Positions 41,227-63,115 of a stretch of DNA of 64,000 nucleotides are shown here, piece by piece. The translations under genes were made by a program, and so were the position numbers. The stretch is from Haliotis cracherodii (taxonomy: Eukaryota), in the NCBI RefSeq assembly GCF_022045235.1, contig NW_027266275.1, positions 18,042,001 to 18,106,000 of the forward strand, given 5' to 3'. Position 1 is the stretch's first letter, and each line of letters begins with the position of its first letter. The notes beneath the pieces are model-generated. The model did not search any database. It saw only the letters and a program-made list of their open reading frames with translations, and had not been told where the DNA came from.

Positions 41227-41358
41227 CTACGACATGACGTCGTCTATAGACCCAGGAGGCCTCACGTTTATCTCAATGTCTCTCTCTATAAACGCGGCTA
41301 ACTCAGTGGCCGTCTTCTCATCAATGGGTTCTCTTCCGTGTCCTGGCCTGTCAGCTTC
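41227..41358 (-). CDS. SLC5 exon 15, terminal (EADRPG...IDDVMS*)
   Basis: ttttttAG acceptor, in-frame to TAG, 132 nt. This is the least conserved exon. Confidence 0.7.
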   Translation of the reverse strand, partial: EADRPGHGREPIDEKTATELAAFIERDIEINVRPPGSIDDVMS

Positions 41359-62300: not shown

Positions 62301-63115
62301 GGTTTAAACACCCGATCATCATTGATCTGCTCTCAACTGTAAGCATGGGAAGTAATGTACCAATAGTCGAGTGATCTTGATAGTTTTACGCATAAGTACC
62401 AGCATGGTGACATTTCGATGTACCAGCTGGTTACTGACAAAGAATAGGAGTGAAGCGGTGTGCAGACATGCTGCTATGCCTCTGTGTCACGTGATTAGCA
62501 ACAGTAAGCATCGTGGGAGATCTGGCGGACCGGAATAGGGAATATTCTTGAGAATTCTACAAGTATACGCCAGACGACAACCTAGATGAACATGACAATG
62601 ACACAAATTATAGGTCTTTTCGGGATTAACCATTGTGCCAAAATTACAGCTGTAACTTTTGCCTTTGCGTCTCGCAAGTCTTGCCAAGTTTATGTTAATG
62701 TTCAAATAATCTTGGCGTTCACATGCGCACTTTGAATTACACTTACCTCATAGGCGCTTGTCACTCCAAGGTTGTAGAACACGGGAACATATATGTGCGC
62801 GGACATCCCGATAGCCAGGAAGTAACCGAACCCAATCCATATATACACCGTCGTGTAGTTGTACATCTCCGCCGGCGTTCCCAGCAACGTGATAGCCGAC
62901 ATGAAGCTGGCCAGCAACGACATCCCGACGGGAACAACGTGCATGTTGCCACCAGCTAGTAAGAAGTCCTTCACGCTTTTCTTACGCCGATCTTTAATGG
63001 CGTAAAATATGCCTATTCCGGCGGAAAAGAGCAGCGTTCCACAGAAAATGACAAAATCCAGCCAATGAAACGAGTTCTTCTGTCCCGTCTGAAAACTGTA
63101 CTGTCTCTCCGCCAT
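41227..63115 (-). CDS. SLC5A8-like: SLC5 sodium:solute symporter (SMCT/SMVT/NIS group), 15 coding exons, 645 aa
   Basis: Exons: 63115-62747, 57038-56973, 56571-56520, 55402-55335, 54603-54449, 51884-51744, 51426-51297, 50780-50692, 49098-48983, 48139-48072, 46120-46034, 45665-45421, 44827-44727, 42219-42101, 41358-41227. All are GT-AG and in phase (1938 nt). Motifs include [45 protein letters not shown] and [12 protein letters not shown]. The exact ortholog cannot be resolved without a phylogeny. Confidence 0.93.
42101..42219 (-). CDS. SLC5 exon 14 ([18 protein letters not shown]...KHQQ)
   Basis: ttacAG acceptor, GTAAT donor, 119 nt. Confidence 0.87.
44727..44827 (-). CDS. SLC5 exon 13 ([15 protein letters not shown]...VSFFT)
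   Basis: ttacAG acceptor, GTGAGT donor, 101 nt, SYLWY motif. Confidence 0.9.
45421..45665 (-). CDS. SLC5 exon 12 ([19 protein letters not shown]...glycosylated loop)
   Basis: cccAG acceptor, GTAAG donor, 245 nt, several NxT/S sequons. Confidence 0.88.
46034..46120 (-). CDS. SLC5 exon 11 ([29 protein letters not shown])
   Basis: caacAG acceptor, GTAGGT donor, 87 nt. Confidence 0.9.
46620..47824 (-). mobile_element. Young 5'-truncated RTE-X-like LINE in SLC5 intron 10
   Basis: Perfect 18-bp TSD aatcagggtgagctaaag (46602-46619 / 47825-47842). Uninterrupted ORF2 C-terminus (YKYLGV...IETGRY...[10 protein letters not shown]) to the stop at 46749. Confidence 0.92.
48072..48139 (-). CDS. SLC5 exon 10 ([23 protein letters not shown])
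   Basis: ttgcAG acceptor, GTAG donor, 68 nt. Confidence 0.9.
48983..49098 (-). CDS. SLC5 exon 9 ([17 protein letters not shown]...SKII)
   Basis: ttacAG acceptor, GTGGGT donor, 116 nt. Confidence 0.9.
50001..50166 (-). mobile_element. Full-length tRNA-derived SINE family B
   Basis: A/B boxes, (ctca)n tail, TSD gactatatcata (49989-50000 / 50167-50178). Other copies at ~38850-38990, 51905-52052 (-) and 63645-63800 (-). Confidence 0.9.
50692..50780 (-). CDS. SLC5 exon 8 ([29 protein letters not shown])
   Basis: ttgtAG acceptor, GT donor, 89 nt. Confidence 0.9.
51297..51426 (-). CDS. SLC5 exon 7 (ALWINAPG...[14 protein letters not shown])
   Basis: ctctAG acceptor, GTAAAT donor, 130 nt. Confidence 0.9.
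51744..51884 (-). CDS. SLC5 exon 6 ([13 protein letters not shown]...NQAQVQR...DAQ)
   Basis: ttacAG acceptor, GTAAGT donor, 141 nt. Confidence 0.92.
53045..53640. mobile_element. ~600-bp MITE, possibly Mutator-like, inserted in a family A SINE
   Basis: TIR caatctcattaaaatcaga pairs with tttgattttaaagagattg. The 9-bp flanks gaacagaat / gaacataat differ by one base. Confidence 0.82.
53853..54012 (-). pseudogene. Degenerate, internally deleted fragment of the same GPCR family (ECL2 joined to ECL3/TM7)
   Basis: gtcccggttctttccgaacgccgattgtttgaaaagtactgtcatttgtgccaaactgggtacagggaaatcggtagtcac aligns to copy 4 at ~20941-21022. ttgacaatgtcaagcaaagtttacattattccgac aligns to ~20609-20643. Confidence 0.75.
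54449..54603 (-). CDS. SLC5 exon 5 ([10 protein letters not shown]...RVYFT)
   Basis: tttcAG acceptor, GTGAGT donor, 155 nt. Confidence 0.92.
55335..55402 (-). CDS. SLC5 exon 4 ([23 protein letters not shown])
   Basis: tttcAG acceptor, GTAAG donor, 68 nt. Confidence 0.9.
55420..56040. repeat. 22-bp minisatellite (acaatacatagaacaatgtcac)n
   Basis: More than 25 tandem units adjoining the exon 4 acceptor. Confidence 0.93.
56160..56495 (+). mobile_element. tRNA-derived SINE family D (Meta-SINE-like)
   Basis: B-box-like gaatcgatccc, core gtcataccaaaagacgttaaaagatggtacttg, cctca tail. The superfamily name is from recall, not from a search. Confidence 0.75.
56520..56571 (-). CDS. SLC5 exon 3 ([17 protein letters not shown])
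   Basis: ttgcAG acceptor, GT donor, 52 nt. Confidence 0.9.
56973..57038 (-). CDS. SLC5 exon 2 ([22 protein letters not shown])
   Basis: cttcAG acceptor, GTAAAG donor, 66 nt. Confidence 0.9.
58811..59929 (+). CDS. Class A GPCR copy 5 (372 aa), nested antisense in the first coding intron of the SLC5 gene
   Basis: Intact ORF with ERV, CMTP and NSSANFIIY. First ATG at 58811 lies downstream of acceptor-like ttggcAG/cgtttt AG sites; AATAAA at ~60285. It sits between SLC5 exons 62747-63115 and 56973-57038. Confidence 0.9.
   Translation: MDVVNITDLPTTTPKSMYPPGYFVIPAEDMVTFRIAMYTTIMPVTALIGLVGNVISFVVLLRHKMRDTTKMVLLSITVCDILHLIAMILFCLIGVTIALDYKPGLYISRKAFPYFGSFLMSIFGRTSNLMILVISLERVCAVIYPLKIKSLWTRKIMGLSIFICSLLVVAILVPYALEFVPTDFPIPNSTQMATVLKLSEFGKNRDVFATLYIVRMSLLRLIPIAVVIISNIAIIVGLYRSKSKRSQMTGQNRDKTPAEQRITQTLFGLALLFFFCMTPGALNILSQLFDYEYNFPKTRNNVYNLVGILGVWLDIVNSSANFIIYIISSRQMRMEFKRVITCRKGTFSDQKSTTDTSASEMRLSTMSVSAVS
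61960..62140. other. Assembly gap (N run)
   Basis: Run of N characters. Confidence 0.99.
62747..63115 (-). CDS. SLC5 coding exon 1 (MAERQ...VTSAYE)
   Basis: SSF N-terminal motifs and a GTAAGT donor. An acceptor-like ttttcag near 63141 suggests a further upstream UTR exon. Confidence 0.92.

Follow-up and report, generated by a model that had tools for sequence, protein, structure and literature searches.

How an intact receptor gene came to lie inside an intron of a transporter gene, and whether the two genes are linked in function, is the question raised by a 64,000-nucleotide (nt) stretch of the Haliotis cracherodii genome (RefSeq assembly GCF_022045235.1, contig NW_027266275.1, positions 18,042,001 to 18,106,000), hereafter the window, in which all coordinates are given unless a contig name precedes them. 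The receptor, N, is an intronless class-A G protein-coupled receptor (GPCR) gene of 372 amino acids (aa) plus stop at 58811-59929 on the plus strand. Its host is a minus-strand, multi-exon sodium:solute symporter gene of the SLC5A8-like type that begins with an ATG at 63115 and runs down to at least 42101. N lies antisense to the host within intron 1 (57039-62746, minus strand), with host exon 1 (62747-63115) and exon 2 (56973-57038) on either side, and this observation of an intact nested receptor was confirmed. The arrangement is probably an ordinary nested gene that arose when a small class-A GPCR subfamily, restricted to abalones, dispersed locally. Intron 1 of the transporter gene next door carries, in inverted orientation, a segment of about 1.26 kb with the single coding exon of the receptor and little else. 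Its source would have been the lineage that led to the paralogue U, now 52 kb to the left of the window, and the copying would have taken place before the source abalone split from Haliotis rufescens. N would then have lost the usual start codon of the family, moved to a downstream ATG and remained functional as a receptor gene; a promoter of its own within the intron most likely drives its transcription, and gene conversion would still exchange sequence between N and U. In intron 5, another and older insertion of the family would have decayed to a 165-nt relic, and the transporter would be a bystander, mostly intron, inside the 114-kb span of the family.

The frame of N is open over 372 aa from the ATG and over 386 aa from an upstream GTG. 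The predicted protein matched Pfam 7tm_1 with 65.9 bits (cut-off 30.5), residues 55-325 aligning to profile positions 5-260 of 260, besides weaker matches to Pfam Srx and Srsx, and it contained seven separate hydrophobic 19-mer peaks (approximately 43-61, 81-99, 118-148, 156-174, 218-236, 266-284, and 306-324). Class-A GPCRs carry the canonical micro-switch motifs DRY, CWxP, and NPxxY. At the aligned positions N reads ERV (ERL in the paralogues), CMTP, and NFIIY, and these variants are common to all six copies of the subfamily and to both of its public relatives, thus indicating a family trait and not decay. The closest solved structures were the orexin-2 receptor (E=4e-14) and the neuromedin-U-2 receptor (E=4e-13). 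Among named Atlas clusters, the nearest (score 0.98) was one of molluscs called "putative FMRFamide receptor"; this name was assigned automatically and is the sole source of the label "FMRFamide-receptor-like". In their sources, the relatives are called "probable GPCR B0563.6", "substance-P receptor-like", and "tachykinin peptides receptor 86C". As far as its sequences indicate, the family is an orphan, peptide-receptor-like, lineage-restricted set.

The host was recognized from its first exon (123 codons, from the ATG to a GTAAGT donor), which matched Pfam SSF with 29.4 bits (cut-off 22.8) and human SMCT1/SLC5A8 (PDB 7sl9) with E=1e-27, ahead of SMVT and NIS. Exon 6 (51744-51884) matched SMCT1 with E=4e-13, SMVT and NIS following in the same order. 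The family assignment was made exon by exon, exons 1 and 6 being searched singly. Intron 1, bounded by tblastn matches and splice sites, is 5,708 nt long, including an assembly gap of 181 ambiguous bases (61960-62140), the sole run of such bases in the window, which lies between the exon 1 donor (62746) and the 3' end of N (59929).

A six-frame search of the whole assembly with N returned 64 matches at E<=1e-10. Six of these, at 73-100% identity, were all located on contig C12 within 114 kb (17,988,249-18,101,926), and the seventh-best had 27% identity, the next paralogues reaching at most 28%. Besides N, the six comprise the tandem units T1 (669-1868), T2 (5439-6638), and T3 (10211-11410), paralogue D (20437-21720), which is 387 aa long from the usual start of the family, and U (C12:17,988,2xx-17,989,4xx), which is 112 kb from N; T1-T3 and D were supported by their open reading frames (ORFs), by alignment, and by synonymous divergence (dS), and all four are on the minus strand. 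N was closest to U (87.1% aa identity), followed by D (81.8%) and T1-T3 (74%). In a search of 5.8 billion public proteins, only 4 of 5,026 candidates matched N at E<=0.001: one from H. rufescens (87%), one from H. asinina (62%), and two remote proteins (24% and 22%). All six copies are about equally far (60-65% aa identity) from the single H. asinina protein and stand apart from it in the tree, and U alone among them was noted to have a close H. rufescens counterpart. These results indicate that the six-member subfamily is, on present sequences, abalone-restricted. U differs from its siblings in that the usual stop codon has been lost, the aligned codon reading through into an eight-residue C-terminal extension; identity to its H. 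rufescens counterpart reaches no more than 94.6%, an apparently fast divergence for abalones that are close relatives.

T1-T3 are 97.7-99% identical at spacings of 4,770 and 4,772 nt, with dS of 0.004-0.011 and omega (the ratio of non-synonymous to synonymous divergence) of 0.6-1.6 on very few changes. They represent a very recent tandem amplification with a 4.77-kb unit. D has a mosaic structure: both of its ends resemble the T copies (95-97% nt identity), and the middle is closer to N and U; at the 5' end, 36 successive polymorphic sites agree between D and T1 (permutation P<1e-4). The relic (53849-54013, minus strand) is made up of two pieces in collinear order, 54013-53931 and 53927-53849, with 74-84% nt identity to the family, between which about 256 nt of receptor sequence is missing, and its best match was to D (DNA, E=1e-19). 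Sensitive tblastn and blastn over 51900-54447 returned these two pieces only, and no larger pseudogene was detected around them.

Much of what the sequence-only reading had described was borne out by these data, namely a full GPCR ORF in the 5.7-kb first coding intron, a relic of the same family in intron 5, which proved to be tiny and to lie between exons 5 and 6, and four more copies downstream of the transporter, all intact. Its description of an amplifying cluster fits the three 4.77-kb tandem copies and not N, which is old (dS 0.20 to U). The simple local dispersal of receptors, which that reading had offered as one of two explanations, agrees with the presence of six members within 114 kb and with N being a duplicate of its neighbors confined to the coding region.

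The extent of the duplicated segment was assessed by blastn of 57100-61959 against the 174 kb formed by the window and a total of 110 kb on its two sides. The DNA common to N and its paralogues covered 58821-59829 with D and the T copies and 58827-60029 with U. The whole shared stretch has approximate bounds of 58772-60035 and comprises the coding region, a few tens of nt upstream, where a four-way alignment suggests faint homology, and about 100 nt of 3' flank shared with U only. No other flank homology to the paralogues was detected by blastn in intron 1, the remainder being unique or common repeat. The usual ATG of the family is gone in N, so that its frame starts at a downstream ATG and its N-terminus is shorter. 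An AATAAA lies at 60285, downstream of N. No poly(A) tail was found after 60035, the most A-rich 20-mer there having 11 A, and comparison of 58700-58830 with 60000-60120 revealed no shared direct word of at least 8 nt that could represent a target-site duplication. Retroposition is therefore unsupported, yet it is possible, and such marks could have decayed at a dS of 0.2. The dS between N and D or the T copies is 0.39-0.41, compared with 0.20 between N and U. In the protein tree, N was sister to U plus the H. rufescens protein (P0001) with a support of 100/100, which suggests that the duplication is older than the split between these species.

Pairwise omega ranged from 0.27 to 0.38. On its own branch, N has accumulated 13 synonymous and 11 non-synonymous codon changes, corresponding to an omega of approximately 0.26 (binomial P=1.1e-3 against neutrality), and the U branch is similar (approximately 0.29). 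With D as outgroup, unique changes numbered 35 in N and 48 in U at the nt level and 14 and 19 at the aa level; with T1 as outgroup, the nt counts were 28 and 53. By these counts, N is under purifying selection on its own branch and has evolved no faster than U. N and U are identical over a 215-nt tract (59522-59736, plus strand) in which 39 successive polymorphic sites agree, a run that none of 10,000 permutations reached. This tract is probably the result of gene conversion linking the nested copy to the cluster.

Contigs assembled from the sequencing runs of other organisms provided further evidence. A run search with 58700-60100 as query listed 13 runs, 10 of which held part of it; none of the 13 contained half of the query words, and none was on record as RNA, the RNA status of X1 and X2 being guessed. 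The contig sets X1, X2, X6, and X7 were aligned to 56400-61900 at 90% likeness. The genome-sized sets X6 (organism C) and X7 (organism D) covered 29 and 30 of 30 bins, respectively, with a difference of approximately 3-5%, and this cover included unique intron on both sides of N. A piece of X6 (59758-60233) and a piece of X7 (59837-60166) run from the last codons of N over the stop codon into locus-specific flank. Because these pieces extend past the homology between N and U, the N locus with its 3' junction exists in organisms C and D; the 5' junction was spanned by no listed piece.

X1 (organism A) is transcriptome-sized and was labeled "RNA?" by the guess of the tool. It covered 14 of 30 bins, some of which are recognizable from X6 and X7 as high-copy repeats; apart from these, its cover consisted of 59104-59376, 59347-59528, and 59758-60148, with 8, 3, and 8 differing letters, respectively. 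Over the first of these pieces N and U differ by approximately 14% (windows at 76.7% and 90.8% identity), and the last extends about 110 nt past the end of the N/U homology; the X1 contigs are therefore N-type and not U. No unique intron or transporter exon was covered by the X1 contigs. This pattern probably represents transcription of an N orthologue, the RNA status being guessed. In X2 (organism B), also transcriptome-like, positions 56973 and 56571 are joined in a contig of 2,085 nt; the 401 nt left out between them are bounded by GT..AG on the minus strand. This contig confirms the junction of exons 2 and 3 and represents a spliced transporter transcript, and two receptor pieces of the same set (59574-59772 and 59743-59912) were assignable to neither N nor U. 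No stop codon occurred among the 15 listed coding-region variants. Depth was 12-38 in the coding bins and 3-9 in the flanks because contigs of paralogues stack there, and hence only the seven listed differences of X1 from N were classified, three being synonymous and four non-synonymous.

Several points weigh against a working gene that was dispersed locally into the intron. The contigs of X6 and X7 are shorter than 700 nt and provide no physical link between N and the transporter exons in those organisms. The RNA status of X1 combines the guess of the tool with an inference from cover, X1 was chosen for holding N, and contigs show neither strand, transcript ends, nor expression level. Four of the seven X1 differences are non-synonymous, and constraint may thus have been weaker of late than over the long term. 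The dS values, the tree, and the branch counts are all open to some bias from gene conversion between copies. None of N, D, T1, T2, and T3 was present as an exact sequence, or by a near match, in a collection of 15 billion proteins, in which U is present under a RefSeq accession as an identical H. cracherodii protein; the annotation may not call these genes, and poor expression support is possible. Finally, the nested status of N depends on the join across the gap in intron 1, through which the continuity from exon 1 to N is unproven.

The alternative explanation in the sequence-only reading was a linked sensor-plus-transporter locus, co-regulated or under antisense interference. Distances between GPCR and SLC5 matches were compared by eye. 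Outside the locus, each of the 58 GPCR matches was more than 300 kb from every one of the 76 other SLC5 exon 1 matches; the nearest pair was 319 kb apart, on C10. The transporter accounts for 22 kb of the 114-kb family span and is mostly intron, and the presence of two of the seven family pieces inside it needs no special explanation. No functional link was found, and a linked unit has no support; the interpretation is supported in its dispersal alternative only. The arrangement can be accounted for without any functional coupling.

A regulatory relationship could still be envisaged, in which N is transcribed head-on toward the transporter promoter, the two genes damp each other, and exclusive expression is kept by selection. 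The place of N is suitable for this, antisense and promoter-proximal, with the transporter promoter 3.2 kb past its stop codon, and nested genes have been reported to cause transcriptional interference in other animals (the available part of PMC3192792). X1 contained N without transporter exons 2 and 3, and X2 contained the spliced transporter with ambiguous receptor pieces, which speaks weakly against co-expression of the two genes and does not address interference. On the other hand, two contig sets of unconfirmed tissue and RNA status cannot show exclusion, and contigs miss rare transcripts. The N locus was also found in the runs of other organisms, but presence in close relatives, at a divergence of about 3-4%, is expected by descent alone, and the pairing does not recur elsewhere in the genome. 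Such interference is considered unlikely. There is similarly only a slim chance that the nesting as a whole is a selected regulatory arrangement, in which head-on transcription of N would make the genes mutually exclusive, for example with the receptor in sensory cells and, as it may be, the transporter in absorptive epithelium, kept in several abalone species since before their divergence while conversion over 112 kb tied N to the cluster. If true, mutual exclusion would make the locus a natural invertebrate case of host-nested transcriptional interference.

N might also be a silent or dying copy, unexpressed, with its frame kept open and its healthy look lent by gene conversion with U. This would agree with the loss of the usual start codon, with the lack of any promoter or flank in common with the paralogues, with the conversion tract from or to U, and with N-derived changes at positions where all paralogues agree (e.g., codons 81, 132, and 230). 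The missing protein record points the same way but is uninformative, since D and T1-T3 are equally missing. However, the identical tract makes up only 215 of 1,116 nt, the own-branch omega and the rate relative to U speak for constraint, and the N-type X1 contigs extend 110 nt past the end of the N/U homology. A silent copy is thus quite improbable, and a locally dispersed gene that is still maintained remains the preferred explanation.

With regard to the gap, it is intronic, lies in no ORF, and touches no coding sequence. Exon 1 corresponds to residues 1-123 of the homologue P0031, and exon 2 resumes at 123/124, with none lost or repeated; exon 1 ends at its GTAAGT donor in phase 0, and exon 2 begins after a CAG acceptor, also in phase 0. 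No other SLC5 exon 1 was found by tblastn in the 174 kb around the window, and genome-wide the nearest exon 1 paralogue, on the same contig at a distance of 50 Mb, has only 67% identity. To its left, the gap is bordered by a copy (61817-61958) of an interspersed repeat, approximately 145 nt long, of which the 174 kb contain 17 further copies; the sequence to its right (62218-62262) corresponds to the beginning of that repeat, oriented alike. This is the pattern of a local, repeat-caused assembly break. The two sides of the gap look like they belong together, true continuity and gap length being unproven. A wrong join at the gap, which would place the receptor beside the transporter and not inside it, is suggested by the estimated length of the gap and the repeats at its edges, but is very improbable in view of an exon 1 that supplies exactly the residues missing from exon 2 onward, of the distant and divergent next paralogue, of one repeat in one orientation at both edges, and of the 2,085-nt X2 contig, whose further 183 nt next to exon 2 would fit exon 1 (letters not shown). 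Further copies of this SINE-like (short interspersed nuclear element) repeat were found at 54028-54144, abutting the GPCR relic, and at 46145-46274, and a (GT)n/(GC) microsatellite at 61760-61810 precedes the copy at the gap. An apparently shared arrangement of the repeat beside the relic, at the gap, and about 570 nt beyond U was rejected as coincidence because the repeat is frequent and its order and orientation are not alike at these places.

Lineage-specific expansions (LSEs) of class-A GPCRs in tandem arrangement are the rule in gastropods, as described in the available part of a survey of 46 species with 25-1,226 LSE genes each (PMC11886862). The present family resembles the gastropod and lophotrochozoan LSEs of that text in being intronless, rhodopsin-type, confined to one lineage, and clustered and partly tandem, as well as in its divergent hallmark motifs and weak Srx and Srsx matches; it differs in size, with six copies and a relic here compared with hundreds per genome there. 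The main text of PMC11886862, in its available part, does not mention Haliotis. Protein-coding genes nested in introns are frequent in animals. They make up about 6% of Drosophila genes (PMC3786989, available part) and may interfere with their hosts, as stated for mammalian nested genes in the accessible text of PMC3192792. Interference would be a possible consequence of the present nesting but no sign of design. As in those Drosophila and mammalian cases, N is a whole single-exon gene in one intron, on the opposite strand and with host exons on both sides; unlike them, it is paralogous to a cluster beside its host, and its origin by local dispersal is visible. No literature on this locus or on nesting of a GPCR in an SLC5 gene was found, and the supplementary cluster maps of PMC11886862 may list abalone clusters. 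The nesting is thus a known kind of arrangement, and N is best seen as a member of a small abalone GPCR cluster that has survived in its new place and is probably expressed. The locus illustrates cleanly how a lineage-specific receptor family spreads: copies were amplified in tandem, one was dispersed in inverted orientation into the intron of a neighbor and survives there with a new start codon, another insertion decayed, and conversion continues. The absence of five intact receptor ORFs from the protein collection, next to the presence of their sixth sibling U, may point to an annotation gap.

The remaining exons of the transporter were mapped from three full-length homologues, obtained by searching exon 1 alone against a representative protein library (3,235 proteins at E<=0.001) and then aligned by tblastn to the 174 kb. 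This returned 10-11 exon-sized matches, collinear with the full-length homologues P0019 and P0031, and reading of the splice sites extended them to 14 exons, all on the minus strand. The same search detected one SLC5 gene only, and no second one that could host U. Exon 2 was defined by tblastn, splice sites, and the X2 joint, as was exon 3 (56520-56571), whose 5' boundary that joint confirms. Exons 4 (55335-55402), 5 (54449-54603), and 6 were delimited by tblastn and splice sites with boundaries set by eye. Approximate positions were obtained in the same manner for exons 7 (51297-51426), 8 (50692-50780), 9 (48983-49098), 11 (46034-46120), and 14 (42101-42219), the last exon supported by homology, whereas exons 10 (48072-48139), 12 (45421-45665), and 13 (44727-44827), likewise approximate, were placed by frame scan and splice sites without a tblastn match.

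The host resembles the clade of SLC5A8/SMCT1, SLC5A6/SMVT, and SLC5A5/NIS in that exons 1 and 6 match SMCT1 best, exon 1 carries the SSF match, and the 14 exons are collinear. It differs in being one of at least 77 exon 1-like matches in this genome. The SLC5A8-like family is strongly expanded, with these 77 matches (E<=1e-8) found across the whole genome, many in dense tandem clusters such as C12:19.57-19.86 Mb (about 14 in 300 kb), C80:10.51-10.64 Mb, C67:36.20-36.47 Mb, and C6:39.72-39.77 Mb. This expansion may hold more interest than the nesting itself.

Two minus-strand ORFs, at 46752-47918 and 25439-26029, resemble what are presumably the tails of ORF2 of non-LTR (long terminal repeat) retrotransposons. 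They share a C-terminal motif; the first lies in the SLC5 intron between exons 10 and 11 and had no Pfam match. Long ORFs of up to 1,260 aa with an endonuclease-like N-terminus were found at window coordinates -30123 to -16125 and are probable long interspersed nuclear elements (LINEs) between U and the tandem copies. Minisatellite-like arrays that are open in several frames on both strands were present at 26383-27006, at approximately -44.4 to -43.3 kb, and at -51.3 to -49.0 kb, and a strong negative GC skew was observed at 24-28 kb of the window.

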